In this document: piece by piece, positions 18,615-58,224 of the stretch
Position numbering within the stretch: position 1 is the stretch's first letter
Layout: every line of letters starts with the position of its first letter
Assembly (NCBI GenBank): GCA_002269645.1
Contig: NIVC01001204.1
Location: 124,001 to 188,000, forward strand
DNA length: 64,000 nt
Direction: 5' to 3'
Source of the DNA: Macrostomum lignano
Taxonomy: Eukaryota
The notes under the pieces: generated by a model
What the model was told of the DNA's origin: nothing
Databases searched by the model: none
Seen by the model: only the letters and a program-made list of their open reading frames with translations
Program-made: the position numbers and the translations under genes

Positions 18615-19374
<760 letters not shown>

Positions 19375-32052: not shown

Positions 32053-32418
32053 ATTATTTAGCCATAAAATGAGATCCAATATAACAGCGTTTGTGTACTC
32101 GTAAACTGCAAAACTGCAGCCAGATGATAAATAAAGTTTTACTGAAAAATGTGGGACTTCTAGCAGACTTGGCACTCCCAGCTTCTGACTCTGCAGGGCC
32201 TCCTCGACCAAGAAGTCTTGGAAAAGACAATGGATGCCGGAGCAAGGGAAGGGAGCGCTGGAAGCCCCACTGCTACATTTTTGGAGTCTTGGGAAGTTGC
32301 TAGTTAGAGAAGGGTGGCAGTGATGCACGCAGAGGGAGGTCGCGGCCAACTCCCCAACTCCAAAACTAAATGAAGAAGCAACCAAGCATGACGAAAGACA
32401 GGAGCTCAACTTTTAGAC

Positions 32419-33932: not shown

Positions 33933-33941
33933 GTATAAATA
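33933..33941 (+). promoter_or_regulatory. Putative TATA box of PAN-FReD paralog 1
   Basis: GTATAAATA lies about 110 nt upstream of ATG 34048. CATAAATA occurs at similar distances before paralog 2 (about 41665) and paralog 3 (about 50143). Confidence 0.5.
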
Positions 33942-34047: not shown

Positions 34048-36237
34048 ATGATATTAAAGTTTGTCATCCACTGCATTCTGGTCGGTGCCGCCATGGCCCA
34101 GGCTTTGGATGGTGCAGGTAAGACATTAGATTAAATTTTCTAGACATTTCATCTTTAGCCATAACATCACTGCAAGTTCTCAAATTTTTGCAGAGTACTC
34201 GACTGACCCTGTGGAGTCGCTGAACTCCACAGCTCCGATTACATCAGCTGGTGGCAGCAGCGACATTCACTGCACTGTGCAGTGCTCGGCCGCTGGAGCC
34301 GCCGTCTGCGCTGCCACCGCCTACGTGGAAGAGACTCGGATGTGCCTGTTCTCAGGCGTGAGCAATGCGGACTTCTCTGCTGCTGCTCCGCGTAGCATCG
34401 TCTTCCGAAGGGTAAAAGGTGCGTTGTAAAGATTACGAAGCTTATGCTTAAGGAGTTTAGCTGGTTAGCAAAGGGACTTCCATATCTATGTCCAGCGATA
34501 TCTCTGAGTGCACACGAAGCTTCGGGAGGCACCTTCTTTCACGCAAGGTGTACATTTGCCCTGAATTTCTTGTCTCATAGGCAGTGTACACACTAGTTGC
34601 CTTGAAGGTTAATTTCTGCACCCAAACCTCAAATTGTTCACATTAGGTATTTGAAAACTTGGATGTCTCAGTAACTTTTCATCACCGGTTTTCTGCCAGG
34701 TCCCGAGCCAGATTTTGGATACTACGTGATGCTGAGTAGGACTCGTACGAACGTGAACATGAGCTTTGCTAGAAACTGGACAGAGTACGAAAACGGATTC
34801 GGCGATGGACTCGACGTGTGGCTTGGTGAGCATTCTCTGACGGCGCTACCAAAGCGTTTTTGTGCTTAAGTAATGGTCGAACAAAATGAATATTTTCACT
34901 CATTTTATTCGATTTTCGGTTGTCTTCGATGGGTTAGCCATACCAAGAAGCAATTCCTCTATGATAGATGGGTTCCTGATTGATAAAATAGATTCATAAA
35001 ACTACGAGTAATGTGCCGAGCCGTGCCACTTTAATACTCGTAAAATAGAAAAAACTCTACCTTTCTGTTTCCAATTTTGTTTTTACTTCGCCCAATTTGG
35101 TATTCTGCATAGATTCCAGCAGAGTTCATATTCACCATAGACTAGCCACTGAAATCGCCAGGAAATATAAACTAGTTCACGAACATCAAACTCCAAACAT
35201 CCAGTTACGCATGCATTCACTGTCCTAGCTCTTCTTTCTGTTCACCAGGCTGATTTCAGCGTACAGTCCCCTCTGCGCCATTCTTTACTTAAGCCATGTC
35301 TTCGATGTTCTGTGGCCCAAATTTCTCGCAGTTGAAAACCAAATTGATTTCTGTTGTCTATGGCTTGTCTGTATAAACTATCTGCCACGTCTCAGACTGT
35401 TGACGGCCACTCACCAAATTAACAGTAGAAATACCGTGGGGGGCGGGGATCTGATATTTTTTTAAATTTTTTTTGACGTACAGAGCAATGTAGGCACACG
35501 AAATTCAACAACGCGAGCTAACATTTTGTTGCGCACCTTCTCAAGCGAAAATCAAGATATTCTACAAATCTGCCAGAAGGTCGGATTTTTCCTTAAGCGC
35601 CAGTGTATTCATGACACCCCTGTGAGCACATCAGCACTGCGCTTCAGTACGGCATTGCTAAGTCCCCGGAATCTCTCTCCCCCCCCCCTGGTAGTACGAC
35701 GGGTGGAAAAATGGCTTGGTATTCCTACTTTTAAATGAAAGAAAAAACCAAAGAAGGACGCAAAAAGGTAAATGTTCACATGAAATGACTATTTAAAGCA
35801 ATTGCTATTTTGTTTTAGGACTTCGGAGAATTCATGAACTGACTGAAAACACGCCCAGGAAACTGCGAGTAGAAGCTGTCTTCACATCCGGTGTTCTCCA
35901 CGTATACGAGTACTCCGGATTCTCCGTGGGCAACGCCAGCACAAACTACCAAATGACTTTCAATTCATTTTTGTCGGCGAGCTCCAACTCATCCTATGAT
36001 GCCATGACGCACCACAAGGGAATGCAGTTCTCAACATTTGATAGGGATAACGATATGTTAGCATCCTCTTCATGTTCGCAGTCCAGCGGTAATGTCGGCT
36101 GGTGGTTTAAAAGCTGTTACTATACTCTTCCCACGGGAAAAATGTCCACATCTAATACTGGTGACTACGTTTACATTTACTGGTACGACGAATTCACTTG
36201 CAACCACATTAAAATGTTATTGCTAGACCTAGACTAG
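34048..36237 (+). CDS. Secreted PAN/apple + fibrinogen-related domain protein, paralog 1 (279 aa)
   Basis: Exons 34048-34117 (signal peptide MILKFVIHCILVGAAMAQA), 34194-34418 (4-Cys PAN-like: HCTVQC..VC..MCLFS), 34700-34825 (FARNWTEYENGFGDGLDVWLG) and 35819-36237 (LRVE..YSGFSVGNASTNY..HKGMQFSTFDRDND..C..GWWFKSC). All introns are phase 1 GT-AG; total 840 nt. Confidence 0.9.
35423..35730. mobile_element. MITE with CAGTAG-type termini flanked by TTAA, in intron 3 of paralog 1
   Basis: TTAA|CAGTAGAAATACC...GGTATTCCTACTT|TTAA. The interior is homologous to the outer arms of the 51.1-53.6 kb foldback. Confidence 0.8.
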
Positions 36238-36904
36238 GGCGAACACGCTGGAGTCCAAACATCAAATCACACTACTGGTGTACAAGGCAACAAAGAATAT
36301 GAACAAGCCTTGAAATCACTTAAAAGATTCAAAATTATTTTGATTTCAAGGCGATGTTAACGCTTACACGAAGGTACAGGGCGCGGAGTAAATAAAAATT
36401 AGTAATTCTGGCTGACAATTACCGCAAAGAAATAGTGGATTAAATTACAGCAACATTTAGGTAATGCAAACTGGGATATTTTGGCAAAGTTTACAAAAAA
36501 CCTTAGAAAGTTGAATTGCAGAATTTTTTGTTGTTGTTTCTTATCCGCTGAAACAGTATAAACTGCTATTAAAATTAAGAAAGTAGAATTATACGAGCAG
36601 ATTTAGTTACTGGCCCAAGTTCGATCGGAGTCGATAAAATTCATCAGTGCGTGTTCGAACTCTGGTAAACAGTACGAGAATTTCAAGCAGGAAGTTTTCC
36701 CGCCGAAGTTTGCTCGCAGGGTTTTTACAATCGGAATTTCAAGTCAAATCCAGTCTAAAGACAATGTTGGACTAGATTAGAACTAGCCTAGCCTAGACTA
36801 GATTTGACTAGACTAGGCATAAAGTAGACTAGATTAAAACTAGACTAGATTTCAAATCCGATTGGATTTGACTTGAAATTCCGACAGGAAAAACTCTGCG
36901 GAAA

Positions 36905-37805
36905 TTCTCGCTGTGGGAAAACCTCGCTGTGGGAAAACCTCGCTGCGGGAAAACCTCGCTGCGGGAAAACCTCGCTGTGGGAAAACCTCGCTGCGGGAAA
37001 ACCTCGCTGCGGGAAAACCTCGCTGCGGGAAAACCTCGCTGTGGGAAAACCTCGCTGTGGGAAAACCTCGCTGTGGGAAAACCTCGCTGTGGGAAAACCT
37101 CGCTGTGGGAAAACTTCGCTGCGGGAAAACCTCGCTGCGGGAAAACCTCGCTGCGGGAAAACCTCGCTGCGGGAAAACTTCGCTGCGGGAAAACCTCGCT
37201 GCGGGAAAACCTCGCTGCGGGAAAACCTCGCTGCGGGAAAACCTCGCTGTGGGAAAACCTCGCTGTGGGAAAACCTCGCTGTGGGAAAACCTCGCTGTGG
37301 GAAAACCTCGCTGTGGGAAAACCTCGCTGTGGGAAAACTTCGCTGCGGGAAAACCTCGCTGCGGGAAAACCTCGCTGCGGGAAAACCTCGCTGCGGGAAA
37401 ACTTCGCTGCGGGAAAACCTCGCTGCGGGAAAACCTCGCTGCGGGAAAACCTCGCTGCGGGAAAACCTCGCTGCGGGAAAACCTTGCTGCGGGAAAACCT
37501 CGCTGCGGGAAAACCTCGCTGCGGGAAAACCTCGCTGCGGGAAAACCTCGCTGCGAGAAAACCTCGCTGCGGGAAAACCTCGCTGCGGGAAAACCTCGCT
37601 GCGGGAAAACCTCGCTGCGGGAAAACCTCGCTGCAGGAAAACCTCGCTGCGGGAAAACCTCGCTGCGGGAAAACCTCGCTGCGGGAAAACCTCGCTGCGG
37701 GAAAACCTCGCTGCGGGAAAACCTCGCTGCGGGAAAACCTCGCTGCGGGAAAACCTCGCTGCAGGAAAACCTCGCTGCGGGAAAACCTCGCTGCGGGAAA
37801 ACCTC
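36905..37805. repeat. 16-bp minisatellite (GGGAAAACCTCGCTGC)n, about 56 copies
   Basis: Highly homogeneous array in the right arm of an inverted repeat (36676-36751 vs 36864-37820). Confidence 0.97.
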
Positions 37806-39404
37806 CTGTTGGAAAGTCTCATCGACCCTTTTTTACATGTAATTCAAGAGAACATTTTTTCTGCACCCAAAAACAAAACTCAAACGAAAACAAAATGTCG
37901 AAATATGAATATGAACGAAGACTTCATATTTCGTTTGTGAAAATGTGTCTGCACCAAATTTTCTGACTTTGATAGCTTCTGGCCTTTACCTAGGCGGAGC
38001 TTCTGATCACCTTTAACCTTTTGAAGCTTCAGTATCGATGCTTGATCAGCAACATTAGGCATCTGGTGTCGAACCCCAAATTGTGTGTCCTTGAAATTTG
38101 TGTGCCTAACTTGTTGCAGCAAGAAAATAACTATAATTCTGTTTCACCCAGCTCTGTCCTTGCGACCGAATATCTTTTTCGATTTTGAAATATCGCAGTC
38201 CAACTCAGTGCTAATCAATGATGTAATATCACAACCGTTAGAGTTTCTTTAATCTTTGTTTTCTGGAAGTTTTGATAACAAGAATTTTGATGCTAAGCAA
38301 AATGTTTTACAACTGAAATGAATAATTGGAAAGAGCTTAAGAACTAGAAATCAAGAAAACAAAGCAAATATATGATTCCTTTTCAAAGTTGTACCTTATG
38401 TGTCTTTTTGTACTCTCTATTCTACAGGCCATTTCACTGTAGTTCTGAAAAAAATAATTCTGCTAGATTTAACAATTAACATGTTTGTTTTAATTAAAGA
38501 CAAACTGTAGTTCTGAATTTTTAACAGTTAATAATTGTTCTTTGAACAATAATATTTATATGCGACAAAAATACCGTTACTTTTTGCGTGTAACTTCTTT
38601 TATAATACGGTGTTTAACTGCAATCCCTGCCAATCAGAGTCCATTGTCTATCTTAAAATCGAGAATCTCGACTTTGTTTTTATGCTTTTTTCCTGAAAAG
38701 TACTTTCTATTTAACCAGTTACGAAAAAATTGTTTTTTAAAGAAATATTCTGTACTAAGTTGTACGCCTCTATTCAAAATTTTGTATATTATAAATCTTT
38801 ATATATGTGTAGCACTACTTTATTACGTCAATATTGGCACAAAATCTGATGTATCTTTCTACTTATTGTTACTATTAACCAAACAAAATGCTTTTTAAAC
38901 AAACGGCTTTAATCTCACTATCGTTAATTTTTAAAGTCTTTGAAAGCTTCGTTAATTTGTTCTCTGGCTTTGTTTTGTATTTACCCACACTGAGTTTGTA
39001 CACATTTATTTCATATGGCGGCTACAGCGTGTAGCCAAATGTACTCATATTTCCTGACATACATGTGAATAATGTTTCTGGAGCCTCTGGAGCCTGTTTC
39101 TGGATTAGTGAGCTCGAGGGCAAGGGACCATTTTTTTCAAAGTCAGGAGCCACGAAGCGCGGAATCCCAGCAGTCGTGTCGATTCAGTAGTTTATTCCGC
39201 TTGAGATGGGAGCTCAAATACTACCCTATATGAGAGAAATTATCTCCAAAGAGAAAAGTTTTCAGCATCCCCTGCAAGTCTGTTTTGCCTCCCAGGCCTC
39301 AGGCTCTAAAAACACTGCTCAAGCCGTTTCATTTGCTGTGGATAGATACAAAAACTTGTGGGTAAAACTAAACCACGCATTAATTACTGCCCATACTGCC
39401 CATT

Positions 39405-39830
39405 CAATGCCTGCAGTGACCAATGCATGCAGTGACCAATGCCTGCAGTGACCAATGCATGCAGTGACCAATGCCTGCAGTGACCAATGCCTGCAGTGAC
39501 CAATGCATGCAGTGACCAATGCCTGCAGTGACCAATGCCTGCAGTGACCAATGCCTGCAGTGACCAATGCATGCAGTGACCAATGCCTGCAGTGACCAAT
39601 GCCTGCAGTGACCAATGCCTGCAGTGACCAATGCCTGCAGTGACCAATGCATGCAGTGACCAATGCCTGCAGTGACCAATGCCTGCAGTGACCAATGCAT
39701 GCAGTGACCAATGCCTGCAGTGACCAATGCCTGCAGTGACCAATGCCTGCAGTGACCAATGCCTGCAGTGACCAATGCCTGCAGTGATCATTGCCCCTGG
39801 AGTAAACAATGCCTGAAGTGATCATTGCCG
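39405..39830. repeat. 16-bp minisatellite (TGCCTGCAGTGACCAA)n
   Basis: About 24 copies of two variants (CCTG/ATG). Confidence 0.96.
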
Positions 39831-40025
39831 ATTGATTTTCCAGTAATCAGACAGCTTCATGCGATAGCCAAAAGCTTAAAAACAAAGTACGCCGTCTGGT
39901 TTTTTTAAAACAGCGTTACAGGGCGCGTTTCTGGGTTTGGGGCGAACGTTGGCCGTGGGTGTTCACCTGTGCTGGAGGTGCTGCTGCCAACGATGCACTG
40001 AACAACAGTATATGAACCAGTAGGC

Positions 40026-40110
40026 CAGGGGTCGGCAAACTCCGGCCAGGGGGGTCACATGCAGCCTGAAAAGCTTCTCTCTCCAGCCCTCGGATCTTTT
40101 GAAACTTCAA
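40026..40110 (+). mobile_element. Possible hAT-type terminus (CAGGGGTCGGCAAACT...), single end only
   Basis: Resembles the CAGGGGT-type termini of hAT MITEs. No matching opposite TIR was found. Confidence 0.35.
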
Positions 40111-41757
40111 AATAGCAATCCGGCCCACTCAGGGTTTGCGTCTCTTCTCAGCTCTCCCCTCTTCTCTTTTCCCTCCCCTTTCCTCTCTACTCTCTTCGTT
40201 TCTCTCTTTCCTTTCCTCTCTTCCTTCTCTCTAATCTCTGTTTCCCCTCTCCTCCTCCTCTATCCTTTCATATCTCATCTCCTCCTGTCTTTTCTCTCGA
40301 TCTATTCTCTCTTCTCTCTCTTCTCTATCTTTTCTATCTTGCAACTTGCAGAGAGACGGATTGCATCTGCACTGCTGTTGAGCCCCAGCAGACCAGAGAA
40401 GGAGCTGCTCAAACAGTGACAGATCCTTGAGGCTGTGGAAGTGGGGGTTGAGTGACAGGTGATTCCATTGTTTTTGAGTTTTAGGAGCGAAGAAGAAGCG
40501 CGGAGGCCTAGCAAGTTCATTGGTTTTCTGAGCTGTTGTTGTCTTGTCCCGACTTCTGCTGCTGCTTGAGGTGAGTGCCTGCCTTGCAGACCTGTCAGGG
40601 AGTAACCAACAGCAGGTTCGCATAAGTTGCTACCCACAGACAAGCAACTCTGAGCATGTAAGAAAAATGAATTGGCCAGTAGAGGAAGGAATGGGTAACC
40701 ATATTGCGGAGTCAAGCACTTGTGAACGTGATTATCTCAGTCCCATATGACTAGAAAATTGGCTTACAGCAGTCTCAAGGACTCTAATACCAAAATCTCT
40801 TACTACGAGTATAGAACCTGACTTCATCGATGATTGTTTTATCTCAAAGTCGAAAAAACAGGTTTAATTTGTCTATTAAGCCGGAATTAAACAGAAATAG
40901 CACTCGGTTTATTGCATTTCTGCTCTGGGAAAGCTCAAGTCCTGCTGTCCAAGAGACGAGATCACGGACGAAAGGGATACTCTGCAAGGCCAAGTAAGGC
41001 TTTGAATCCCCAACCCACCAGTTGCAACAGCAGATTCTTCCTACAGAAAGCCGGCCTAAAGTAAAAGTGTCCAGTAAAAAGTTAAAAAACAATAAGGGGA
41101 TCCAAAAGAGAGGCGCGGAGTTGAAGAAAGCAGAGGTTCATTGTTCCAGAGAGACGGGATCGGGTTGGCAAACTGGATTTGCTGGCTTCTTTCCCAGGTG
41201 GCAGCTGCTTCTGAACGGAAAAACTGCGAGGCCCTCCCCTCCTTTGGAAGCCATGCAGTTCTGGAAATCCAGAAAAGAAACTGGTGAAGCTAAAACAACT
41301 TCACATTCACTCATTACTCCCAACTACACCGACTAGCTGCCTGGTGCATGAAAGATTCAAAGCTCCACTGTTGGCTTTTTACGCGACTCTTCAGCGTCCA
41401 TGCTCTGTCGACTGTGGGTGAGCTATTAAAACAAAGGACTAGCTATAAGACAATAGGATTGCTAGGAGATGCAGAGAGCGCCAACATGGGATGAGGGTGG
41501 TTGACACTACGAGTTAAGAGTCAAAGTCAAGTTTGGCAAGAAAATAGCCTCAGCTACTGTTGCTGCGCTAAAAACACGTTGCTAAGAGACGCAATGCTCA
41601 GATCCTAGGGCAGCTCCAATGTCTGAGCATCTGGCAGGCTGTTTGAGCGGCATTTGTGGCAGGGCATAAATATGAGTGAGCTGCTCCTCCGGGTGAGACG
41701 CTGCCTCACCGAGACATTCAAGAATCCAGAGCTCACTGATAGACTGAATCTCCTGAC

Positions 41758-44700
41758 ATGATTCGCGAAATTCTTCTCGAATGCGCCTTGGTCTGCGCTG
41801 CTGCAGCGAGTGACCTTGACGGCAAAGGTAACAGCTTACGGTGACTAATTTATTTACCAATTGTAAAAATTCAACGCGAAGGTGAACCAAAAATTCGTTG
41901 CAGAGTACTCGACTGACCCTGTGGAGTCGCTGAACTCCACAGCTCCGATAACATCAGCTGGTGGAAGCAGCGACATTCACTGTACTGTGCAGTGCTCGGC
42001 CGCTGGAGCCGCCGTCTGCGCTGCCACCGCCTACGTAGAGGAGACACGAGTGTGCTTGTTCTCAGGCGTGAGCAATGCGGACTTCTCAGCTGCCGCTCCG
42101 CGCAGCACCGTCTTCCGAAGGGTGAAAGGTTCGCAATTGCTGGGTTTCGGAGCTGATTTCATTCAATTTTTATAAGTGGTTTGGCTATTCTGTAGGACCC
42201 TTTTGTGGCAGCTGATACATTAGTTACGACAGACGTCCGCAAAGTAGTGTTATTTTTCGTGTTGCGGACATTTGGTAAGTTGCACTGACACAAGTTTGGT
42301 GGCGTTCAAAAGCGACAAGCTTTTTTAAAAAATTATTTAAACTTCAATCAATTTGAGTTTATATATCAAGAGATATGTGTATTTAAGTATAAAAAGATCG
42401 GTCATTGACTTACAGAACCTATAGACACCTAAGCTGTCTCGGCAGAACAACTGTCTGAAAAAAATTATCGATTGCCACTGAGCAGAATGCTAATTTTAAC
42501 AGATATTTGAGCTTCTGAAAGTCTACGAGCAATCTCCCTCTACGAGAGCGCGTTAGTCATGTTAGAGAAGAAACTTGCCGCTTTCAAACGACACCAAACT
42601 TGTGTCAATGCAACTTGCCAAACGTCTGCAACACGTAAAAGTAACACTATTTTCCGGAATACCTTTAGTTAGTTAGTTAGTTAACTTCGGACCGCCCTGT
42701 CCGAAGACGCAGCGGGGAGGCGAGCGTCGCCCATTCCGCTAATCCCTGAAAGACCCGCATAGGCTAGGGCGCGGGGCCAGTCAGGGAGGTCTGCCGGTCT
42801 TGTCTGCAGCGTTGTCTTCGGTGGGGAAGACGGAGGCTCGCTTGGTGGCCCATAGGAACCGGATAAGCCGTGGGATATTCTCGGGCCGGCAAGCGTCGTC
42901 CAGGGACGGGTTGGGCCCGAGGTGGTTGAGCCGGTCTCGGTTGAAGGCCGGACAGTAGCAGACAAAGTGCTTGGCGTCTTCGTTCTCGAGGTTGCAGAAG
43001 GGGCAGAGTTCGCTCCGGCGAACACTTCGGAGGAAGCAATGCCTGGCAAAGCAACCGTGACCTGTGAAGGTCATAATGAGAGCCCGGATATCTTTTCGAT
43101 TTTTGTTCAAAAGGATTCTCCGCAGCTTGAGGGACAGATTAGGCACTGCCGCACGGAATTGGCGGCAGTTGGAAATGCCAACCCATCTGCGCAAGTGCAG
43201 GATGTCCGCCCAGCCGTTAATCTGACGATTAATGACCGTAGCGGGGATGGGAGCAGAGGCACGGGGCCAAGGAGCGAGCCAGAACTACCCGCCTTGGCGA
43301 GGGAGTCGGCGAGCTCGTTACCTCTGAAGCCGGCGTGTCCTGTGATCCACGTGAGCCGGACGGAGTTTCTCCGAGCCAGCTTGTTGAGCTGCCCGATACA
43401 GTCGCAAACTGTTCGGGAGTTCGTAGTGGTGTGACAAAGGGCCTGCAAGGCGGCCTGGCTGTCAGAGTGGTAGAAGATTCTGTTGTCCTTGAAGTCCCTG
43501 CAATGGAGCTCAGCTGCACAGGAGCTGATGGCAAACTTCATTCTGGAAGACGCTGGAGAGTCTGCCAGTGTGTTGGGCGTGAGTGGCGATCACGCGGCCG
43601 TTGATAAGGATGCAAACTCCAAAGTCAGATATACCGTCTTTGGAGATCCGTCAGTGAAGCAGTGAGCCTCCTGAGGGGCCCAGCTGTCGTCGGCGTTTTC
43701 CCTAGAGGGGATAGTGACCTTGAAGCGTTGGTAGAGATTGAGGGAGCGCGGCTTACAGTCCGAAAGGACAGCCGCACTCCTACTCTCCTCCAGAACTTTA
43801 AGGCACAGGTCAGAGTGCGGCAGGAGCTTGCGCTTCGCCATCGCTCTTTGTGGCTTGAAGCTAACGCCAGCCTCGATGAGCCGGCGGGTAGTTTTAGCAC
43901 CCTGCGACGGACGAAGATGTCCAGGGGCGGGAGGCAGAGGAAAGCATTGAGGCCGTCAAAGGGTGCAGAAAGCGGGGCATTCAGGATCATGCGACACGCA
44001 CGTCCCTGCACCTTTTTGAGGGCTTCGTGGCAGGTTTTAATCTGCAAAGCGCTGGTCCAGACCAGGCCGGCGTAAGTAACGGCCGGCCGGACCATTGCGG
44101 TATAGATCCACCAGAGCCGCTTCGAAGTGAGGCCCCAGGTGGTGCCGACGGCTCAGCACAACTGCGCAAGAATCGCGAGGGCTTTTTTGGTTTTGGCCTG
44201 AACGTGGGTGGACCAGCTCAGCCTGTGGTCGAGCGTAACGCCGAGACGCTTGCAGGATGGGATTTCCACCCCCCGTAAAGCTTTAGTGGCCGAATACGCA
44301 GTTGACCCTGCTGGTGAACATGATCGCGACAGTTTTGGTCTCAGAGAGTCTGAGGCCGCATCTGTCCACCCATTGTTCAGCAGAGCGAATAAAGTTTTGT
44401 AGAAGATCCCTAAGGGTTTCAGGTGACGGTCCGGATGCCACGGCTGTGACATCATCGGCGTAACCGACCTTAAGGATGGGGTCAAGATGGCTGTCCCTAA
44501 GGAGCTCATCGATGACCATGTTTCAGAGAAATGGAGAGAGAACACAGCCTTGGGGCTGCCTTTGCAGACGGTTACCGTCCGTTGGTGGCCCAGCAGGTGC
44601 GCGGTGGCAGTACGGTGGCTGATCATATACATGATCCACCGGGTGAGGTGCGAGTGGGTTCCTCTAGCACGAAGAGCTCTGTCAAAAGCCTCAAAGAGGA

Positions 44701-46043
44701 CATTATCGAAGGCTCCAACAATGTCGAGGAAGACAGCGAGAGCGTAGTCATTGCCAAGAATGGCTTTCTACAGCATGTCGACCAAGACGTGAAGCGCGTC
44801 TCCGTGGACCTGCCTGCCCGAAAGGCTGAGCGGCTTGTTCTTCAGTTCCACAGAGAGGAGGCGCCAGAGCACCAGTCTCTCCAACAGTTTCACCAGTGAG
44901 GAGGTGAGGCTGATAGGCCTGAAGGATTTAATGGACCGGTAGTCCGGTCGGTTGGGCTTGGGGATAAAAACCACCTTAGCCTCGGTCCAGGGTTTCGGAA
45001 CAAAGCCGAGAACATGGCTTTCAGGAGCCAGCAAAGGTTCTGCAGGAAACCGGTGCATTTCACCACCTCTCGCAGGAAGTAATGATTGAGTCAGCCAGTA
45101 CGTGTCCGCCCACTGAGTGGTCAGGGGGGTCGGGCCTGGCTATCTCGTTCGGGAAAAACGCTGTTAGCATCGCTTCCGGTGTTTCTCCTGGGTTCTCAGT
45201 GAGCGAGCCGTCGGCTCTTTTAAGGATTCCTAGCTAAGTAGCATGAATTTAAATAATTTTAAGTAGCATGAATTCTTCAAATGATGATTCATATTTTTAT
45301 TAAACCTGCCCCAATGGGCAGATGTGCAACCGACAGCTCAGCTCTTGCGCGGCGCATCTGAAGGCTGCGTACGGCTGTTCAGTCCAAGGATGCATGGGGT
45401 CGCCACATACACCTTCAATCACCTTTGAATTGTGAACTGAAGCAATGCAGGGTTAAGTGTCTTGCTCAAGGACACAAATTGTTCCTACTAGTAGGTCGAG
45501 AATCGAACCCCCGACCTTTCAGTCGTAATTGCGACGCAGCAACCACTAGGCTACAACCCCTAGTAGCTAGGCTAGTTTACATGGAACAGTCGCTATAGGA
45601 CTTTTTGAGTTTCAGATCTTCTATCAAAATCACTTGATTCAGGTTTAAAAAAAATACACGAGCTGACTGGGAGCACGCCAAAAAAGCTGAGAGTTGAGAC
45701 TGTGTCCACCACTGGCATTCCATACGTCGATGAGTATTCCGGATTCTCCGTGGGCAACGCCAGCACCAACTACGTCATGACCTTTGATGCTCGATTGACG
45801 GCCAGCTCAAACACAACTGGCGACTCGCTCACCTATCACAAAGGCATGCAGTTCTCCACCATGGACAGGGATAACGATCTAAGTAGCTCGTCTTGTTCTA
45901 ATGGCTATGCGAATGCCGGCTGGTGGTTTAAAAGCTGTCAGCGTACTCTTCCAACGGGAGGAACCTTCTCGTCTTACAATCCCTATATTCGTTGGCAATA
46001 CGCTGGTAATTTTCTAGTGGCTATTCGATTGCTGCTGATTTAA
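41758..46043 (+). CDS. PAN-FReD paralog 2: exon 3 missing and replaced by a LINE; either an in-frame 231-aa product or a pseudogene
   Basis: Exons 41758-41827, 41904-42128 and 45643-46043 are intact and phase 1 throughout (696 nt). No exon-3 homolog (W.EYENGFG) lies between them. Confidence 0.7.
42663..45232 (-). mobile_element. 5'-truncated, frameshifted non-LTR retrotransposon with RT, RNase H and a CCHC zinc knuckle (I-group, LOA/R1-like)
   Basis: WTEAKVVFIPKPNR..FRPISLTSSLVKLLER; AVFLDIVGAFDNV; GYADD; LGVTLDHRLSW; RNase H CFTDGS..SDSQAAL..WITGHAGFRGNELADSLAK; CPFCNLENEDAKHFVCYCP; 3' tail (TAAC)n at 42663-42685. Confidence 0.92.
45295..45560 (-). mobile_element. tRNA-derived SINE (CORE-related) in intron 3 of paralog 2; internally deleted homolog at about 54130-54265 in paralog 3
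   Basis: The minus strand reads TAGCCTAGTGG (A box), GGTTCGATTC (B box), GTGTCCTTGAGCAAGACACTTAACCC and a 3' AATAAA. Confidence 0.75.
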
Positions 46044-47027
46044 ATCCATTTTAGCTTGAATTTGTTACTCTGAAGACCGGGAGTGCTTTGAATGCACATA
46101 CGCTGTTGGTTCTGTAATATTTTGGTTCAATTAAAATTTCTTTCGCGAATACCATTGAGATGGCGGCGTAAGTTTTTCGCAACCTCACCTATAGCTTATT
46201 TTGGTGGTGCACTAACATAATCTATAAAACTAAATCTGTGGATTTCAGTCAGTCCAATCCTAACCTAAATTTACTTTAATCCTACAGGAGACACTTTCTC
46301 CACTTACGATCCTTTATTAAACATTAAAATGTCAAATGAAAATCGATAGTTAGCATTTATCGATCTAGCATTCGTCTGTATATAAGTTTTAAACCGGACG
46401 CCAAGTTAGTCGACTGTCACAAAGATTTCAACACCAACAAGAACTGAGTCTGAAAAAATAATTTTTACAAACTATTAAGCAATAATTTTAACAACTTTTT
46501 TGTTTCTTTTCAATTTGCTAAAATAGCCGCTTAAAGATCTATTTTGATATAATAAAAATCTATTTTTATTATATCCTTCTTTTAATTTTTTCTGAAATCT
46601 CTAGAAAGCGATTTTCTAAAGAGCAGGATCTTCTGGCTTATCCAAATATACTAAATCTCTAATATCCTATACTAAATCCTACATATACGTTATCAAAAAA
46701 CTCCACAATCTAAAATATCAATAGATCGCAATTTCTTTAACGAGCATCTGCTTTATGAAAGCTGAATCCAATCCTAACGTTGTTTTTTAAGATTTTTATT
46801 TTGTCATAGTATAGCGATTGTCGTTTAGAGAAAAATACCGAAAATCACTGCTGCATAGAATATGCAACGACCTTTTGTTAAAGTGGGCAACCAGTTAAAG
46901 AGATCCAAGCCTTAACTGAAACTATAGGCTTTGTGAAATATACATGTAGTAAAAAAAGTAGTAAAAAAATATAATAAAAATAATAATAATTTCAGATAGG
47001 CCCTCATGCAGCGCCTTGGGCGACTTA

Positions 47028-49050
47028 TTGATGGGTTTCGGCCCTTTCGGCCCCTTTCGGGAAGCCTTTGGGCTTCAGGTCTCAGAAATAAATCAATAAG
47101 AGTCCTGGCCCCCCACTCCTGTCAGATGGTCAGCCCCATGGTAGCTTGATCTTGTGGCGAGCAGTCTAGGTCCTATAGCTAAGAGAGGGACAGCGAGAGA
47201 CAAGCAGGGAGAATTTCGAAGGTAGAGATCAGCTAATCCGCAGATTAACTAACCCGCTGCCACCAGCCCGTGCGTCCTGGCTCACCAAAACCGTCCTGGC
47301 TCGCCACCTGCGCCTCACTCAGTGTTGAGGCTGGCGCCAGATGGTCTGAGAGGATGCGGGCGGTAGCTTTTTTCTCATCATTTTTGACAGGCCATCAGAT
47401 GCGTTGCGTTTTACCACTAAAAGTACTTTGGGATTAGCGATTAGCAATTTCTCTTCACCATCTTCACTTTTTACTTAATAAGATCTCTCTAATGTATATT
47501 TTTTCATTAATTTTTGTCATTTCTACGCGAAAGGTCATAAATCATTATGTAGCGATTTTGAGTGATTTATGACCGCACCTGTCGTATTTTTATGCCCCCG
47601 AGGGAACTGATAGGATCTTCAGGTCACGTGAGTTTGGGTGGCAACAAGCTCAGCCAATCAGAAAATTTGACGTCAGTTATAACAAATCGGCTCAGCCAAT
47701 CAGCGTCGGGGTGTTCCATTTTAGCAAATTGCGGTCCAGTTGGCGGCTATATAAACCAGTGTTTTTGGCCCGCTCGGACTTAACGTCCTGGAGCTTGGCC
47801 TAACTTTGGACCTGCTCGGACCCAGCACACAACTTCTGGCTCCCGGGACTCGACCGTCGTCTCTTGATCCCCGGATCGCGACAGCCCGGCCATCATCATC
47901 AAGGACGAATCCCCCGGTCGACGGCATCGATCATCGAGGTTAAGATCATCACCTGCTAGCTATCTGCGAAGACTGCGACATCATCGTCCCAGACCTACAG
48001 CTGCGAAGCACTAAGCCGATTCGGTCACTGTGGATTACCTGGTCTCCGGCTGTTGAGTTTCTGATTGGTTGGGTGAGAGGCTACCTAGTATTGCTTGATT
48101 GGGCGATTCCTTATCTGTCCCCTGTTTCAGTAGCTGGATTAGGCGCACACTTTTGCTCATTTTGTTCAGCAGTGCTGTTATTGGGGCAGAAGTCACTTAA
48201 TAATACTGTTAGTAGTCTGAATACTCCAATTCAATCTGAAGTGTGAAGTGATTCAGGGAGAAGGTTAAATCTGACAGTTATTTTTATCGGTTTTATTTCT
48301 TTTTTCGCTGATGGCTCAGATGAGTAGCTAAGCTAGCAGGCGCCGGTAACAGTGGACCAATGGCAAGGCAGTTCTCAGTCGATCAATCTATCAAATCAGT
48401 TAGCAAAATTGTCAATAGTGCCGAATCGGCGCTAGAGATGTACTCTGTGCACTCTAGATTCGCCAAGCGGCTCGGGTAAAGAATCATGCGGTCTCTGAAG
48501 TTTGAGTTAGTCGATCATCAGCGCTATGAGAGGCTAGTTGGCGCGTTGAAGGCCAAAAGTACATATCTTCGTATTTAGCAATGTAATAGTACATGTAGCT
48601 ACCCCATAGTCTCGCCACTGCAAGAATCCCCTGCAAAAATCCCCTCTGCACCTGCATGGTCAATGTGATCAAGTCCCAGCAGAGTCTCTTATCATCGGCT
48701 ATGACTTCGAGATTGACAGCAAAAAGACACTAGTTGGCAGGTAAGTGCTAAGCCTCCTCTAGTCGGAAGCCCGATTTTGAAAGTTCCGGTTTGGTGAGCC
48801 AGGACGCACGGGCAGGTGGCAGCGAGTTAGCTTAGTCTGCGGATTAGCTAATCTCTACCTTCATTCAAAATTCTCCCTGCTTGTCTCTCGCTGTCCCTCT
48901 CTTAGCTATAGGACCTAGACTGCTCGCCACAAGATCAAGCTACCATGGGGCTGACCATCTGACAGGAGTGGGGGGCTCAAATTGATTTATTTCTGAGACC
49001 TGAGGCTCGGAGCCTTCCCCAAAGGAGCCGAAAAGGCCGAAACCGATCAA
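47028..49050. mobile_element. About 2-kb element bounded by inverted repeats of about 265 bp, with a promoter-like or LTR-like interior
   Basis: 47028-47293 is the reverse complement of 48786-49050 (roughly 85-90% by eye). The interior has CCAAT at 47654 and 47696 and TATATAAA at 47748, with no clear ORF. Confidence 0.75.
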
Positions 49051-50236
49051 ATATTTCAAATTACTTTTATAGTCCTGTGAATAAGCGACATCGCATACTT
49101 GCCAAGCTGTACTTCCCAAGTTGCAGTGCATGTGCCGCAGACCATACTTTGAAAGTCATATAGAAAGTAGCGAGAAACATATAAAACTTTCCAAGTTACC
49201 AGCAAAGCCAACATTGAGTAGCTACGCGTCGTACTTTAAAAGCCAATCCAATACAAAGTACCAGTGCTGACCTTGAAAGTTTTCAACGCTTTTTTGCAAT
49301 TCTAATTCTTTTTTTAGAATTCTAATGAGCCCGGCGCAGAGGCAGCTCCTGGGGAGGAGCTGCGGGCAGGCCCGGGACCAACCCCTAACCCCGACTTGGC
49401 GTGGCAACCGAGAGGGTGGATGCGTGAGCCGGCCCGCACAGAAGGACAGTGAACTGAGCTCCCCCCAGATGCTCTAACGCAACCAGAGTAATCCGCTAAG
49501 TCTAACCGTCCAGCCCCCGCCTCCGTAGTTACGGGCTTGTCTAGTGCTGTTTTAATTGCATGCGCTGTGTTGTGTAAACCCCGCCGTCGTTAGGAAAGCG
49601 TCGTCCGCCAGTCGCAGCAGCAGATCCTAATTCCAGAAGAAAGCAGAGGTTCATTGTTCCAGAGAGGCGGGAGGGTGGGCAAAATGAATTTGCATGCTGG
49701 CTTCATCCCCAGATGGCAGCTTGGCTCCCCTTTGGAAGCCATGCACCTTTGGGAATCCGGCAAAAGAAACTGGTGAAGCTAAAATAGCTTCACATTCACT
49801 CATTGCAAGCTGTGTGAATGATAGACAAATTACTCTCGACTACACCGACTAGCTAAACCTGCTGCATCGCTTCAAAACTTCAAAGCTGCACTGTAGCTTT
49901 CGACGCAACTCTTCAGTTTCCATGCTCTGTCGACTGTGGGTGAGCCATTAAAACAAAGGACTAGCTACTAGACAATGGGACTGCTAAGAGATGCAGAGAT
50001 GCAGGGGAGCAGCCAACATGGGATTGGGGTGGGTGACACTAGGCGTTACAGTAGGAGTCTTTGCTAAGACGTTGCTAATTAAGCGACGCAATGCTAAGAT
50101 CCTGAGGCAGCTCCAACGCCTGAGCGGCATTTTGAGGCAGGGCATAAATAGGGGTGAGCTGCCCCTCCGGGTAGAACGCTGCCTCACCGAGACATTCAAG
50201 AATCCAGAGCCTCACTGATAGACTGAATCTCCTGAT

Positions 50237-53200
50237 ATGATTCGCGAAATTCTTCTCGGCTGCGCCTTGGTTTGCGCTGCTGCAGCGAGTGACCTTGACG
50301 GCACAGGTAACAGCTACGGTGACTAATTAATTTACCAATTATAAAAATTCAACGCAAAGGTGTACTAAAAATCCCTTGCAGAGTATTCGACTGATCCTGT
50401 GGAGTCGCTGAACTCCGCTGCTCCGATAACATCAGCTGGTGGCAGCAGCGACATTCACTGCACTGTGCAGTGCTCGGCCGCTGGAGCCGCCGTCTGCGCT
50501 GCCACCGCCTACGTGAAAGAGACTCGGCTGTGCCTGTTCTCAGGCGTGAGCAATGCGGACTTCTCGGCTGCCGCTCCGAGCAGCATCGTTTATCGAAGGG
50601 TAAAAGGTGCGCAAGTGCGGGTTTCATTCACTTTTTATGGGCAGTTTTTTCATACTGTAGGGCCTTTTTTGGTAACTGAGACTTGAACCACGACGTGTGT
50701 CCGGAAAAAAGTGTTCTTTTTTGTGCTTCTGACGTTTGGTAAGTTGCACTTTGGTGTCGTTTAAAAGCGGCAATTTACGAGCTATTTGTTTAAAATGAAT
50801 CGAATTGCTATTAATATATTTTTATATATTAAGAGACACTTGTATTTAAGTACAGGGAGATTGGTCATTGAAGGTGAGGTGAGAACCTGTATATGCACGA
50901 GCTGTGAGGAAAAAATTATCGATTGCCACTGAGCAGAATGCAAATTTCAACGGATATTTGAGTTTCTGTAAGTCTACGAGCACTCTCTCTCGCTTAAGTC
51001 ATGTTACCTCGCGTACGCTTTCCAACAACTTACCAAACTTAGCAACACAAGTATAACACTATTTTCCGTACAACCCTAATAATTAGCTGATTGATTAACA
51101 GTAGGAATACCAAGCCATTTTTCCGCCCGTCGAACTACCAAGAGGGGGGGAAAAATTTCCCCCCCCCTGACAATTTTTTTTGCTGCGCCGGAACGGAGCA
51201 ACGCAGGCACACAAAATTCAAGAACACGGGCTAACTTTTTGTTGCGCACCTTCTCAAACAAGAATCAAGTTGCCAACCCTCCGGACCGTCGAGATATTCG
51301 ACGATTCTGCCAGAAGGTCAGATTTTTCCCATAAGCGCTAGTGTATTCAGTACACCCCTGTGCGCCAATTAGCACTGCGCCTCAGTGCAGCCTTGCCAAG
51401 TCTCCAAATTTCATCAGCACGTCGACCAAATGTGTCTGCATCAGCCCTGACTTCGTTGGTTACTGGCCTTCACCGAGACGGAGCTTCTAGACCTTCAACA
51501 GGTGGCACCAGGTGACTATGAACACCTTGATGCGAATTTCTCTAGTTTCGCCGATCAAGCCTCGACAGTAGGCAAGCCTCAACTGCCAGACACCCTCAGC
51601 TAGTCTCCTGAGCATTCCTTCATCATCCCGACACCGACGGCACCTTCAACAGGTGGCATCAGGTGACTATGGACGTCCTTTTGCAAATATGTCAGGTCTT
51701 TCTTATCAAGCTTCAATAATGGGCAAACCTCAACCGACGGACATTGTCAGCTAGTCTTTCAAGCATTCCATCATCATCCCGACGCCGTCGGCTCCTTCAA
51801 CAGATTACACCAGGTGACTATGGACAGCCTGATAAGAATTTCTCTAGTTTCGCCGATCAAGCCTCGATAGTAGGCAAAAATCAACTGCTGGACATCCTCA
51901 GCTAGTCAGTCAAGCATTCAGCCATCAACCGGACGCCGTCGGCTCCTTCAACAGATTACACCAGGTGACTATGGACAGCCTGATGCAAATTTCTCTAGTT
52001 TCGCCGATCAAGCCTCGACAGTAGGCAAGCCTCAACTGCTGGACATCCTCAGCTAGTCTCTCAAGCATTCAGCCATCACCCCGACGCCGTCGGCACCTTC
52101 AACAGGTGGCACCAGGGGAGTACGGACACCTGAGCGTGATTTTTCATCATGCTCTTAACATTTCTGAAGCTCTCAAAATTTTTAAAGCACGGACATTGCT
52201 ATAGTTAAGCTTGAACTCATGTTGCTGTATATTATATTATTATTACACATACTTTTATGCATACAAGCTACATACATATTTTATTCGAAAAGCTGTTTAG
52301 TTTATTCAACTAAAATATAGAACCCAATTTTTATGCAGAAAGGGTTATGCTTTTAAGAAGCCAGTAAATTCAATCCGTTTTTCATTTTTTAATGATTCAG
52401 AAATGTTAAGAGCATGATGCAAAATCACGCTCAGGTGTCCTTACTCCCCTGGTGCCACCTGTTGAAGGTGCCGACGGCGTCGGGGTGATGGCTGAATGCT
52501 TGAGAGACTAGCTGAGGGTGTCTGGCAGTTGAGGCTTTCCCACTGTCGAGGCTTGATTGGTGAAACTTGAGAAATTCGCATCAAGGTGTTCATAGTCACC
52601 TGGTGTCATTTGTTGAAGGTGCCGACGTCATCGGGGTGATGACGGAATGCTCGAGAGACTAGCTGACAATGTCCGTCGGTTGAGGTTTGCCCATTATTGA
52701 AGCTTGATAAGAAAGACCTGACATAGTTGCAAAAGGACGTCCATAGTCACCTGATGCCACCTGTTGAAGGTGCCGACGGTGTCGGGATGATGACGGAATG
52801 CTTGACTGACTAGCTGAGGATGTCCAGCAGTTGAGGCTTGCCCACTGTCGAGGCTTGATCGGTGAAACTTGAGAAATTCGCATCAAGGTGTTCATAGTCA
52901 CCTGGTGTAATCTGTTGAAGGAGCCGACGGCGTCGGGATGATGATGGAATGCTTGAGAGACTAGCTGACAATGTCCGTCGGTTGAGGTTTGCCCATTATT
53001 GAAGCTTGATAAGAAAGACCTGACATATTTGCAAAAGGACGTCCATAGTCACCTGATGCCACCTGTTGAAGGTGCCGTCGGTGTCGGGATGATGAAGGAA
53101 TGCTCAGGAGACTAGCTGAGGGTGTCTGGCAGTTGAGGCTTGCCTACTGTCGAGGCTTGATCGGCGAAACTAGAGAAATTCGCATCAAGGTGTTCATAGT

Positions 53201-53656
53201 CACCTGGTGCCACCTGTTGAAGGTCTAGAAGCTCCGTCTCGGTGAAGGCCAGTAACCAACGAAGTCAGGGCTGATGCAGACACATTTGGTCGACGTGCTG
53301 ATGAAATTTGGAGACTTGGCAAGGCTGCACTGAGGCGCAGTGCTAATTGGCGCACAGGGGTGTACTGAATACACTAGCGCTTATGGGAAAAATCTGACCT
53401 TCTGGCAGAATCGTCGAATATCTCGACGGTCCGGAGGGTTGGCAACTTGATTCTTGTTTGAGAAGGTGCGCAACAAAAAGTTAGCCCGTGTTCTTGAATT
53501 TTGTGTGCCTGCGTTGCTCCGTTCCGGCGCAGCAAAAAAAATTGTCAGGGGGGGGGAAATTTTTCCCCCCCTCTTGGTAGTTCTACTGTTAATGCAGAAT
53601 TACAGTAAATCTAAATGACTACTATTCCACGATTTTCAAGATAAATTGACAACATT

Positions 53657-53728
<72 letters not shown>

Positions 53729-54806
53729 TGCTACTACTACTCCTACAACTTCTGCAACTACAAATACTACTCCTACTCCTACTCCCGGATACCATGTGAT
53801 GATGAGTCGTACAGGGCTCACACTAAGCTTTGCTCGAACTTGGACTGAGTACGAAAACGGCTTCGGCGATGGAGTGGACATGTGGCTCGGTGAGACCTAC
53901 GAGAGTATTGGTTCAACAGAAACAGTTTTAACCTATGAGTGGCCTATTTTAGTAATAAAAGATAAAAACATTTAAACATTTGTTTTCCCAAAGTCTTTGT
54001 GACGAAAGATTTAATAACTTACCATCGACCCTTTAGCAGGGCCGTGACTTTTGATTTATGTTATGATGACTCATATGCCGACTTAAAAGTGAGTAAAATT
54101 TTAAGTAGCACGAATTCTTCAAATGATGATTCATATTTTTATTACACCTGCCCCAATCGGCAGATGTGCAACCGACAGCTCAGCCGCAGCTATTGCGCGG
54201 CGCATCTGAAGGCTGCGTACGGCTGTTCAGTCTAAGGACTCTAACCATGCACTAGGCTACAACCCCTTGTAGATTAATTTACTTGTAACAGTCGCTGTTT
54301 GACTTGTAGACTTGTACTAAAAAAGACATTTTTAATCGCCACAGCAAGCTTTATGCTTATCCAATCTTGCATTAAAATCACTTCGTTCAGGCCTGAAAAC
54401 AATAAACGAGCTGACTGGGAGCACGCCAAAAAAGCTGAGAGTGGAGACTGTGTCCACTGCTGGCGTTTCGTACGTCGATGAGTATTCCGGATTCTCCGTG
54501 GGCGATGCCAGCACCAACTACGCCATGACCTTCGATGCTCATTTGATGGCCAGCTCAAACACGACTGGCGACTCGCTCGCCTATCACAAAGGCATGCAGT
54601 TCTCCACCATGGACAGGGATAACGATCAATCTCCCACTTCTTGTACCTCGAAATACGGCAATGGCGGCTGGTGGTTTAATTCCTGTCTGCGTACTCTTCC
54701 CACGGGAGGAGCCTACACAGCGTCCAACGGGGCGATCATCGATCCCTTCATTCGCTGGATATACGCTGATGAACTTCAACAGGCTATTCGATTGCTGCTG
54801 ATTTAA
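50237..54806 (+). CDS. PAN-FReD paralog 3 with a Thr-rich mucin-like stalk (319 aa)
   Basis: Exons 50237-50306, 50382-50606, 53641-53889 (DKLTTL-T19-STTTT...PGYHVMMSRT..FARTWTEYENGFGDGVDMWLG) and 54391-54806. Phase 1 GT-AG introns; total 960 nt. Confidence 0.9.
51099..53588. mobile_element. Foldback-type element: arms of about 1.1 kb with internal 151-bp tandem repeats, spacer of about 225 bp, TTAA flanks
   Basis: TTAA|CAGTAG...CTACTG|TTAA. The arms 51099-52173 and 52398-53588 are reverse complements. Unit starts are at 51492, 51643, 51794, 51945 and 52096, with 5+ units on the right arm. Confidence 0.9.
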
Positions 54807-58019: not shown

Positions 58020-58224
58020 GTTCTTGGTCTATTCAAGCGATGTATCTGTTAGAGAGTTGTGGGCAGTGAGCAACCACTCGAAAGATTCCGTGCTTCCGAG
58101 TTTTCTAGCAGGTACTGCACGCATTAATTATCAAATTGTTACTTCTCTGCTAGGGAATTTAATAAGAGTTTCTCATTAAGTCATGAAATATAACTTCCTT
58201 CTAGGGTTGTAGTAGAGGTTGCAC

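Follow-up and report, generated by a model that had tools for sequence, protein, structure and literature searches.

What kind of protein results when a PAN/apple module is joined to a fibrinogen-related domain (FReD), and what would such a protein do in a flatworm? The question is raised by a 64,000-nt stretch of the Macrostomum lignano genome (assembly GCA_002269645.1, contig NIVC01001204.1, positions 124,001 to 188,000 of the forward strand), hereafter the window, in which three tandem paralogous genes, g1, g2, and g3, can be read on one strand (forward) at 34048–54806. The answer that we consider probable, if well short of certain, is that these genes belong to a family expanded in M. lignano and encode small secreted two-module proteins, a PAN module followed by a FReD without its A subdomain (A-less), that are lectin-like binders. 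Judged by their sequences, g1 and g3 are intact. The cluster has evolved by tandem duplication and, in g2, by damage from a transposable element; the near identity of the PAN exons within it is most simply explained by gene conversion, while the FReD, chiefly its last exon, diverges fast.

Three Tandem Genes with Symmetric Phase-1 Exons

All introns of g1–g3, as defined from the sequence and its splice sites, are of the GT–AG type and in phase 1, and the three genes have in common an exon 1 of 70 nt and an exon 2 of 225 nt. The 279-aa product of g1 is encoded by four exons at 34048–34117, 34194–34418, 34700–34825, and 35819–36237. The first of these carries the start codon and a predicted signal peptide (MILKFVIHCILVGAAMAQA, followed after the cleavage site by LDG), the hydrophobic core of which has a 10-aa Kyte–Doolittle mean of 2.5, and ends in phase 1; the second (phase 1-1) is assigned to the PAN/apple module on the basis of profile and fold model; the third (126 nt, phase 1-1) encodes a short linker (PEPDFG) and the start of the FReD (…SFARNWTEYENGFGDGLDVWLG); and the fourth encodes the rest of the FReD, that is, the B and P subdomains with the DRDND calcium motif and a Cys pair, and ends with a TAG stop codon. 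The 319-aa product of g3 has the same plan, with exons for the signal peptide (50237–50306, conserved in another genomic copy from M. lignano), the PAN/apple module (50382–50606, recognized from sequence, Pfam, and the second genomic copy), a Thr-rich stalk plus the FReD start (53641–53889, 249 nt, phase 1-1), and the rest of the FReD up to a TAA stop codon (54391–54806). The 231-aa product of g2 is encoded by an exon for the signal peptide (MIREILLECALVCAAAAS; 41758–41827), a PAN/apple exon (41904–42128), and an equivalent of exon 4 with the rest of the FReD and a TAA stop codon (45643–46043). The N-terminus encoded by exon 1 is hydrophobic in each gene and has a cleavage motif of small residues, the cut being placed between AQA and L in g1 and between AAS and D in g2 and g3. 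A search for further paralogs in the window found none at an E value below 0.1.

The preliminary description of this locus had reported a tandem cluster of genes for signal peptide, PAN, and FReD with symmetric phase-1 exons and had pointed to differences in stalk, exon content, and C-terminal loops. The gene models bear out the cluster and the phase of every intron across g1, g2, and g3, and a comparison of the paralogs confirms that their C-terminal loops differ and that the stalk does too, as a Thr-rich run of about 45 aa in g3 is lacking in g1. The layout that had been ascribed to all three genes (signal peptide, PAN, linker plus FReD start, and FReD rest) holds for g1 and g3 only because g2 is without the linker and FReD-start exon.

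The homology of g2 and g3 extends beyond the genes as a duplicated block that pairs 41123–42540 with 49636–50991 and 45255–46921 with 54097–55803 at 75–92% identity; the homology of g1 to g2 and g3 is confined to the coding exons. A further copy of g3 is provided by M. lignano contig NIVC01000558.1 (L002), to which positions 47423–62650 of the window have about 96% DNA identity and which, on sequence comparison, we take to be a different allele, homeolog, or line. The four exons, splice sites, and reading frame of g3 are all kept in this counterpart. The g3 stalk is mostly an (ACA)n microsatellite run (53649–53786), and its equivalent in the second copy (17028–17267 of L002) is three codons shorter with an ACA-to-GCA run that changes Thr to Ala.

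A Fibrinogen-Related Domain without the A Subdomain

The Fibrinogen_C model of Pfam (PF00147, cutoff 22 bits) matches all three products well above the cutoff, with 108 bits in g1 (E value 7e-31), 70 bits in g2 (3e-19), and 109 bits in g3 (3e-31), so that the Fibrinogen_C part of the domain assignment in the preliminary description is certain. The match begins at position 39–42 of the 221 profile positions in g1 and g3 and at position 78 in g2, and the FReDs of M. lignano relatives are likewise short at the N-terminus, with matches that begin at positions 33–57. The best solved relative of the g3 FReD is the fibrinogen (FBG) domain of tenascin-C (E value 1e-22), which is aligned over chain residues 46–186. 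Because the profile match starts at 39–42 and the tenascin-C alignment at 46, the A subdomain and its disulfide are missing, and none of g1–g3 has the complete organization of A, B, and P subdomains (about 220 residues with the A-subdomain disulfide). We considered the possibility that an exon for the A subdomain had escaped detection and rejected it on two grounds: the intron between the PAN exon and exon 3 of g1 is just 281 nt long, and the same set of exons makes up an annotated paralog (P0002), which is A-less as well.

What is left of the domain retains its most characteristic residues. All of g1, g2, g3, and the second g3 copy carry the calcium motif, FDRDND or MDRDND, and the signature C…GWWF.SC, and in alignment A1 positions D217, N218, D219, and C226 are invariant and C240 is found in at least 90% of sequences. 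A full-length AlphaFold model of g1 has a predicted local distance difference test (pLDDT) score of 66, and a Foldseek search with it retrieved ANGPTL2, FGL1, tenascin, ficolins, and tachylectin-5A with E values of about 1e-9 and TM-scores (by target) of about 0.6; these structural matches of the model support a FReD fold for g1.

Compared with the well-known lectins of this fold, ficolins, tachylectin-5A, and FIBCD1, the Macrostomum proteins share the FReD itself (Foldseek E values of about 1e-9 to 1e-8; phmmer E value of about 1e-18) together with the DxDxD calcium motif and the P-subdomain disulfide, but they lack a collagen-like or coiled-coil oligomerization region as well as the A subdomain. 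In particular, neither a collagen match nor a Gly-X-Y run such as that of ficolins was found in the g1–g3 models, and no Pfam match of the immunoglobulin family was obtained in any of them at E values up to 10, whereas snail FREPs carry one or two immunoglobulin superfamily (IgSF) domains upstream of the FBG domain. With tenascin-C and tenascin-R only the FBG core is held in common, as tenascins are very large matrix proteins with EGF and FN3 domains.

Exon 2 as a Divergent PAN/Apple Module

PAN_1 (PF00024, gathering cutoff 21.4 bits) is the top non-FReD Pfam match in every paralog, and M. lignano relatives score 14–20.4 bits. Despite a profile score that stays under the cutoff in the spliced models, the identification of exon 2 as PAN in the preliminary description is favored by cysteine spacing, a confident AlphaFold model, and fold matches. 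A profile made from seven PAN exons has as its best match in the PDB the N-terminal PAN module of plasminogen (E value 0.025), and the four invariant Cys residues of the PAN exons, spaced C-x3-C-x7-C-x11-C, align one-to-one with those of plasminogen PAN. An AlphaFold model of the PAN module alone has a pLDDT of 80.8 and a strand-helix-strand-strand…strand topology. Almost all of the top 50 Foldseek matches of this model are known carriers of PAN/apple modules, among them plasminogen, the N domain of HGF, SML-2, MIC4, leech antiplatelet protein, factor XI A4, and AMA1, and the best E value is 3.9e-3 at a probability of 1.0. The N-terminal PAN modules of plasminogen and HGF thus have the four-Cys spacing and the beta-alpha-beta-beta fold of the Macrostomum module, although the identity is only 12–19% and the Macrostomum proteins have no kringle or protease domains. 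Automatic annotation in UniProt concurs, as relative P0142 is named "Apple domain-containing protein." On the combined grounds of sequence and model, we therefore regard exon 2 as coding for a divergent PAN/apple module.

Loss of an Exon from g2

Where the third exon of g2 would sit, its intron contains a broken non-LTR (long terminal repeat) retrotransposon of the long interspersed nuclear element (LINE) type on the reverse strand (42665–45240, the right end being approximate). Its parts are a (TTAG)4 tail (42665–42680), an RNase H region (43107–43541; RNase_H profile E value 2e-8), and a YADD reverse-transcriptase motif (44451–44462), and its reading frame is broken; no second copy of it was found in the window. 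The homology between g2 and g3 is interrupted over the corresponding interval, 42540–45255 in g2 against 50991–54097 in g3. Searches of 42129–45642 for a remnant of exon 3 (tblastn with word size 2 and an E value of 10; blastn with word size 7) returned chance 8–12-mers only, and a diverged third exon in g2 was ruled out on that result. As read from the sequence, the third exon is lost to a LINE-associated deletion. Exon 2 splices in frame to the last exon, but Pfam positions of about 39–77 are skipped and core strands of the FReD are lost with them, so that the FReD of g2 is probably crippled.

Because P0158, a protein from another M. lignano assembly in which a g2-like PAN is followed by a stalk and FReD-start exon, retains the equivalent exon, its loss is specific to the g2 copy in the window. 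In a relative-rate count over exon 4 with g1 as the outgroup, g2 has 3 unique changes and g3 has 9, and we rejected the view of g2 as a decaying pseudogene since its exon 4 does not decay faster. For the same reason, either the exon loss is recent, as the count suggests, or what remains of the gene is still constrained.

A second element, of the foldback type and about 2.5 kb long, lies in intron 2 of g3 (51098–53589) and is not part of the gene proper. Its arms (51129–52131 and 52584–53586) are each 1003 nt long, 94% complementary, and made up of 151-bp subrepeats. The element is not present in the otherwise 96% identical contig NIVC01000558.1, and the insertion is therefore polymorphic or specific to this copy. 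Fragments related to it occur in intron 3 of g1 (35480–35734).

Unequal Divergence of Exons

The exons of the cluster differ in how far they have diverged. Between g1 and g2 or g3, synonymous divergence (dS) is saturated in exon 1, 0.18–0.25 in the PAN exon, about 1.0 in exon 3, and 1.5–2.1 in exon 4, and the synonymous contrast between the PAN exon and exon 4 is strongly significant (Fisher P = 3–5e-9); the PAN-exon dS of g1 against g2 and g3 equals the divergence of g2 from g3. The identity of g1 and g3 in exon 4 is 69–72%. The ratio of nonsynonymous to synonymous divergence (omega) is 0.05–0.18 in the PAN exon, consistent with strong purifying selection on it, and 0.64–0.96 in the last FReD exon, the value for exon 4 of g2 against g3 being 0.64 and that of g1 against g2 and g3 over the exon as a whole 0.14–0.23. 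Unequal rates in the cluster, with a conserved PAN exon and a fast last FReD exon, are thus borne out. A comparison of g3 with its second genomic copy gives 6 synonymous changes and 1 nonsynonymous change in the PAN exon, as opposed to 3.7 synonymous and 11.3 nonsynonymous changes in exon 4 (omega about 1; Fisher P = 0.02). The changes in exon 4 lie mostly in the loops of the P subdomain and beside its second Cys. This pattern fits either diversifying selection or relaxed constraint, the counts being too small to choose between them.

The near identity of the PAN exons could in principle reflect constraint on synonymous sites. We consider this explanation unlikely and prefer gene conversion because the proportion of synonymous differences between the two g3 copies is higher in the PAN exon (0.10) than in exon 4 (0.04). 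Homogenization of the PAN exon is not a rule of the whole family either: of the domains compared among 12 family members, conservation is lowest in the PAN core, with a mean identity of 42% compared with 62–70% for the FReD core, and at another M. lignano locus (L001) neighboring paralogs diverge most across the stretch that bears the PAN module. Because PAN is the most variable of these domains family-wide, its near identity here is local to the cluster and is best explained by gene conversion. Mosaic relatives such as P0142, in which a g1-type signal peptide is joined to a g2-type PAN and the start of its intron, fit such conversion.

A Family Expanded in M. lignano

A sequence search found 11 homologs in M. 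lignano, and a search of 1.84 billion representative proteins with the PAN-exon profile returned 19 matches, 12 of which, including all of the ten best, are M. lignano representatives; several are fused or fragmentary gene models. The proposal of a multigene family expanded in this lineage is upheld by these numbers, and the Macrostomum type of PAN appears nearly private to M. lignano. A paralog annotated in GenBank (P0002; L001, NIVC01001037.1) has four exons of 70, 237, 120, and 431 nt, all in phase 1. It is adjoined by an uncalled paralog (8097–9098 of L001), and an isolated PAN-like fragment lies downstream (13592–13759). Since this locus, too, holds a neighboring paralog and a PAN-like fragment, tandem arrangement is usual in the family.

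UniProt names the M. lignano relatives either "Apple domain-containing protein" or "Fibrinogen C-terminal domain-containing protein," and no papers on family members were found through UniProt or locus-tag identifiers. Several of its models from another M. lignano assembly, P0142 (A0A1I8H7W8), P0143, P0158 (A0A1I8H3M1), and P0159, are mosaic or fused: P0158 has a g1-type signal peptide, two consecutive PAN exons, a stalk, and a FReD, and P0143 strings together three family copies. Such models are in frame because all exons are symmetric and in phase 1, and they may be artifacts of prediction. For the same reason, tandem paralogs could in principle swap or concatenate exons without a shift of frame, as the two PAN exons of P0158 would illustrate.

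PAN and Fibrinogen Domains Combined in Other Phyla

The preliminary description had taken the pairing of PAN and FReD to be possibly lineage-specific and had raised the possibility that it was undescribed. Neither idea holds: the pairing recurs in Cnidaria, Annelida, and Mollusca, including corals, a hydrozoan, an annelid, and mussels; it is also already present in UniProt labels and in the literature on mollusc FREPs, where PAN/Apple is mentioned together with FBG in Biomphalaria FREP1, in Lottia FReDs, and in four genes of Crassostrea gigas (PMC7588048). A narrow literature search for the pairing gave no paper, and these mollusc cases came from a looser one. With a metagenomic protein that has PAN and a full FReD (P0012) as its seed, a sequence search identified the pairing in Clytia hemisphaerica, Oculina patagonica, Owenia fusiformis, and Mytilus. 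PAN_1 is above the threshold in Oculina (42 and 40 bits), Mytilus (29.7 bits), and Owenia (22.4 bits) and below it in Clytia, and the proteins of these other phyla cover Fibrinogen_C positions 2–220. The Macrostomum PAN profile itself retrieved no PAN plus FReD protein from another phylum.

The closest parallels are the PAN/Apple FReDs of molluscs (Biomphalaria glabrata FREP1/Bg179, Crassostrea gigas, Lottia gigantea, and Mytilus P0135), which are secreted, have PAN at the N-terminus and the fibrinogen domain at the C-terminus, and form multigene families in a spiralian, as in Macrostomum. However, the mollusc FReD is complete (Pfam positions of about 2–220), whereas that of Macrostomum has no A subdomain, and Biomphalaria FREP1 has an additional IgSF domain. 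Cnidarian proteins, those of Oculina (labeled "ficolin-2-like" or "MFAP4-like") and Clytia, have the same domain order as the Macrostomum proteins, and in Oculina the genes also form a set of three in tandem on one strand, like g1–g3; their FReD is full-length, and in Oculina an EGF-like exon separates it from PAN. The Oculina genes, at 236–3240, 6001–8835, and 12008–14835 of CM126636.1 (L004), each encode 349 aa with PAN_1, EGF-like, and Fibrinogen_C domains and make up an independent cluster of like kind.

Gene structures differ among these proteins. Exon boundaries in Oculina, Clytia, and Mytilus are unlike those in Macrostomum, and the Owenia gene is intronless. The signal peptide and PAN are on one exon in the cnidarian genes, and in Mytilus P0135 one exon encodes the protein start together with PAN and is followed by an exon for the A subdomain, whereas in Macrostomum PAN is on a phase 1-1 exon of its own. 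We looked for intron positions common to Macrostomum and the other phyla and found none in the genes compared. Because exon structures differ between phyla, they give no sign of a common ancestry of the pairing, and its origin by repeated exon shuffling is plausible.

What the Proteins May Do

On the reading that we favor, each protein would consist of a signal peptide, a four-Cys PAN/apple module, an optional Thr-rich stalk, and an A-less FReD and would act as a soluble lectin-like binder. The P subdomain of the FReD would bind a glycan or an acetylated ligand in a calcium-dependent manner, PAN would provide a second, conserved surface for binding protein or carbohydrate or for anchoring, and the outcome would be that extracellular targets are cross-linked or tagged. 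Secretion, calcium binding, lectin activity, and O-glycosylation are predicted by analogy with the known properties of PAN and of FReDs such as those of ficolins, tachylectin-5A, and FIBCD1, and the stalk is probably O-glycosylated.

Several observations weigh against this reading. The genes are known here as gene models read from the sequence alone, and the g3 counterpart carries no gene annotation in GCA_002269645.1. PAN_1 remains under the gathering score in all window copies (12.8–16.8 bits). In the g1 model, the P subdomain is of low confidence, with a pLDDT below 50 at residues 213–241, and loss of the A subdomain might alter or abolish canonical folding of the FReD. The residue after the second Cys of the P subdomain, a position occupied by a ligand-contacting His in tachylectin-5A, varies among Y, Q, L, and F, and because of this variation binding of acetyl groups cannot be assumed. 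Relaxed constraint would account equally well for the omega of about 1 in exon 4. Finally, the PAN exons cease to be similar no more than about 6 nt from either exon border, and this exon-bounded similarity differs from what random conversion tracts are expected to leave.

More specific roles can be proposed for such binders. One tentative possibility, raised in the preliminary description, is that they are pattern-recognition lectins of innate immunity that are secreted by epidermis, gut, or gland, use the variable FReD to bind glycans of microbes, and have diversified under pressure from pathogens. Analogy with ficolins, tachylectin-5A, and snail FREPs favors this role, the first two of these being among the matches of the g1 model (Foldseek E value of about 1e-9), as do the multigene, tandem nature of the family, the contrast between the omega of the last FReD exon (0.64–0.96) and that of PAN (0.05–0.18), and the clustering of variable positions in the loops of the P subdomain. 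However, a literature search gave no flatworm study that ties FReDs to immunity, a full-text search for M. lignano together with fibrinogen gave no paper on immunity or the microbiome, and fast evolution with tandem duplication is equally typical of reproductive proteins.

A role in reproduction is a possibility of the same standing: the proteins would be made in the prostate, transferred in seminal fluid, and directed at glycans of the partner's antrum or of sperm, and would evolve under sexual selection or conflict. The expression data found for FReD transcripts of M. lignano all point to prostate gland cells and a putative place in seminal fluid (PMC4490696, PMC5977470), and none of these transcripts could be tied to the g1–g3 locus. 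The BLAST table (Table S1) cited for 76 prostate-limited, socially plastic transcripts for putative seminal-fluid proteins of M. lignano includes FReD-like transcripts (RNA815_9549.1-.4, RNA815_11128.1, RNA815_14220, and RNA815_50917) (PMC5977470). RNA815_9549.4 is tail-specific and, by in situ hybridization, prostate-specific (PMC4490696), and its partial sequence translates to an A-less FReD (…PAEVVFQRHLDNSLSFAQNWHGYVKGFGD…). Other carbohydrate-binding modules, WSC among them, abound in the prostate set, and an omega near 1 with turnover of tandem copies would suit seminal-fluid genes. RNA815_9549.4 was considered as a transcript of g1–g3 and rejected: like the products of g1–g3 its product is small and has an A-less FReD, but its identity to g1 reaches only about 40% over the comparable stretch, the exon 3 region, its published fragment shows no PAN, and it maps to another locus outside the window, and it thus represents a different FReD gene. 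The immune and reproductive readings thus have equal support, each being a supposition as far as g1–g3 are concerned. As an observation on the prostate-limited set itself, Table S1 has many matches to WSC domains, matches to "fungistatic metabolite," and several FReDs, which suggests a glycan-binding theme in the seminal fluid of M. lignano (PMC5977470).

A bolder combination of these elements, which we regard as unlikely, is a "constant anchor, variable head" arrangement in which exon-limited conversion would fix PAN while the A-less FReD and the microsatellite-coded stalk diversify, yielding a lineage-specific, combinatorial set of secreted recognition proteins for defense or sexual conflict. 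It is quite improbable that the proteins are instead structural parts of mucus or extracellular matrix, with an O-glycosylated Thr-rich stalk and two adhesive modules that would cross-link epidermal or rhabdite secretions in the manner of a mucin. The stalk of g3 (about 45 residues), the shorter Thr/Pro linkers of relatives P0001 and P0158, and the position of tenascin FBG domains as the closest solved sequences would suit such a role; but g1 is stalkless, g2 is without the stalk-bearing exon, the stalk of g3 is a short microsatellite-coded run that varies between genomic copies, and the proteins are small (279–319 aa) and have none of the repeats typical of matrix proteins. That the cluster is decaying, its members being unexpressed or nonfunctional duplicates in a repeat-rich, recently duplicated genome whose open reading frames (ORFs) are kept only by their youth, is very unlikely, for although a core exon of g2 is lost to a LINE, a 2.5-kb foldback element is inserted in a g3 intron, the g3 counterpart has no GenBank annotation, and the two g3 copies differ in exon 4 with an omega of about 1, g1, g3, and the second g3 copy all retain intact splice sites, frames, cysteines, and DRDND in spite of a paralog dS of up to 2, purifying selection on the PAN exon is strong (omega 0.05–0.18), exon 4 has an omega of just 0.14–0.23 between g1 and g2 or g3, and its unique changes number 3 in g2 against 9 in g3.

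The analysis adds three unannotated genes to a little-studied M. lignano family, and its practical value is modest. It places Platyhelminthes beside Cnidaria, Annelida, and Mollusca as phyla in which the pairing of PAN/apple and fibrinogen domains recurs. Only two features are worth pursuing, the exon-limited homogenization of PAN and the A-less FReD. A homogenized PAN exon beside a fast FReD exon offers a testable case of concerted evolution at the level of exons combined with diversification, and the A-less FReD would be a minimal functional FReD if it is true that these proteins fold and bind ligands. Because other FReD transcripts of M. lignano are prostate-limited candidates for seminal fluid, the family also allows one to ask whether an "immune" lectin fold was recruited to reproduction, and M. 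lignano is amenable to RNA interference, in situ hybridization, and transgenesis.

Neighboring Sequences

Putative promoter-like motifs precede each gene of the cluster on the forward strand. A pattern search placed a TATAAA box at 33934–33939, about 110 nt 5′ of the g1 start codon, and the TATA-like sequence GGCATAAATA occurs 5′ of g2 (41663–41672), within the duplicated upstream block, and 5′ of g3 (50141–50150). Short-period tandem arrays are found around and between the genes at 36896–37805, 39405–39829, 32421–33099, and 31642–32053, with units of 16 bp (57 and 26 copies), 21 bp (33 copies), and 14/31 bp, and more such arrays extend across much of 10070–21900; because of these arrays there are many spurious long ORFs on both strands.

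Other candidate genes flank the cluster. Upstream, a long ORF on the forward strand (29368–30621) encodes a Gln/Ala/Ser-rich region followed by several C2H2 zinc fingers (zf-C2H2 E value 2.5e-24) and looks like a putative transcription factor of the Snail/Scratch type, and two exons on the reverse strand (3615–4334 and 6604–7362) match DUF229, which is sulfatase/phosphodiesterase-like, with E values of 1e-46 and 8e-25. On the other side, a phospholipase A2-like ORF on the reverse strand (56797–57174), which scores 31.2 bits against a Pfam cutoff of 32.1 bits, lies between g3 and a single-exon gene for a DHHC palmitoyltransferase (60421–61398, reverse strand) that is 99% identical to M. lignano BOX15_Mlig020350g3.

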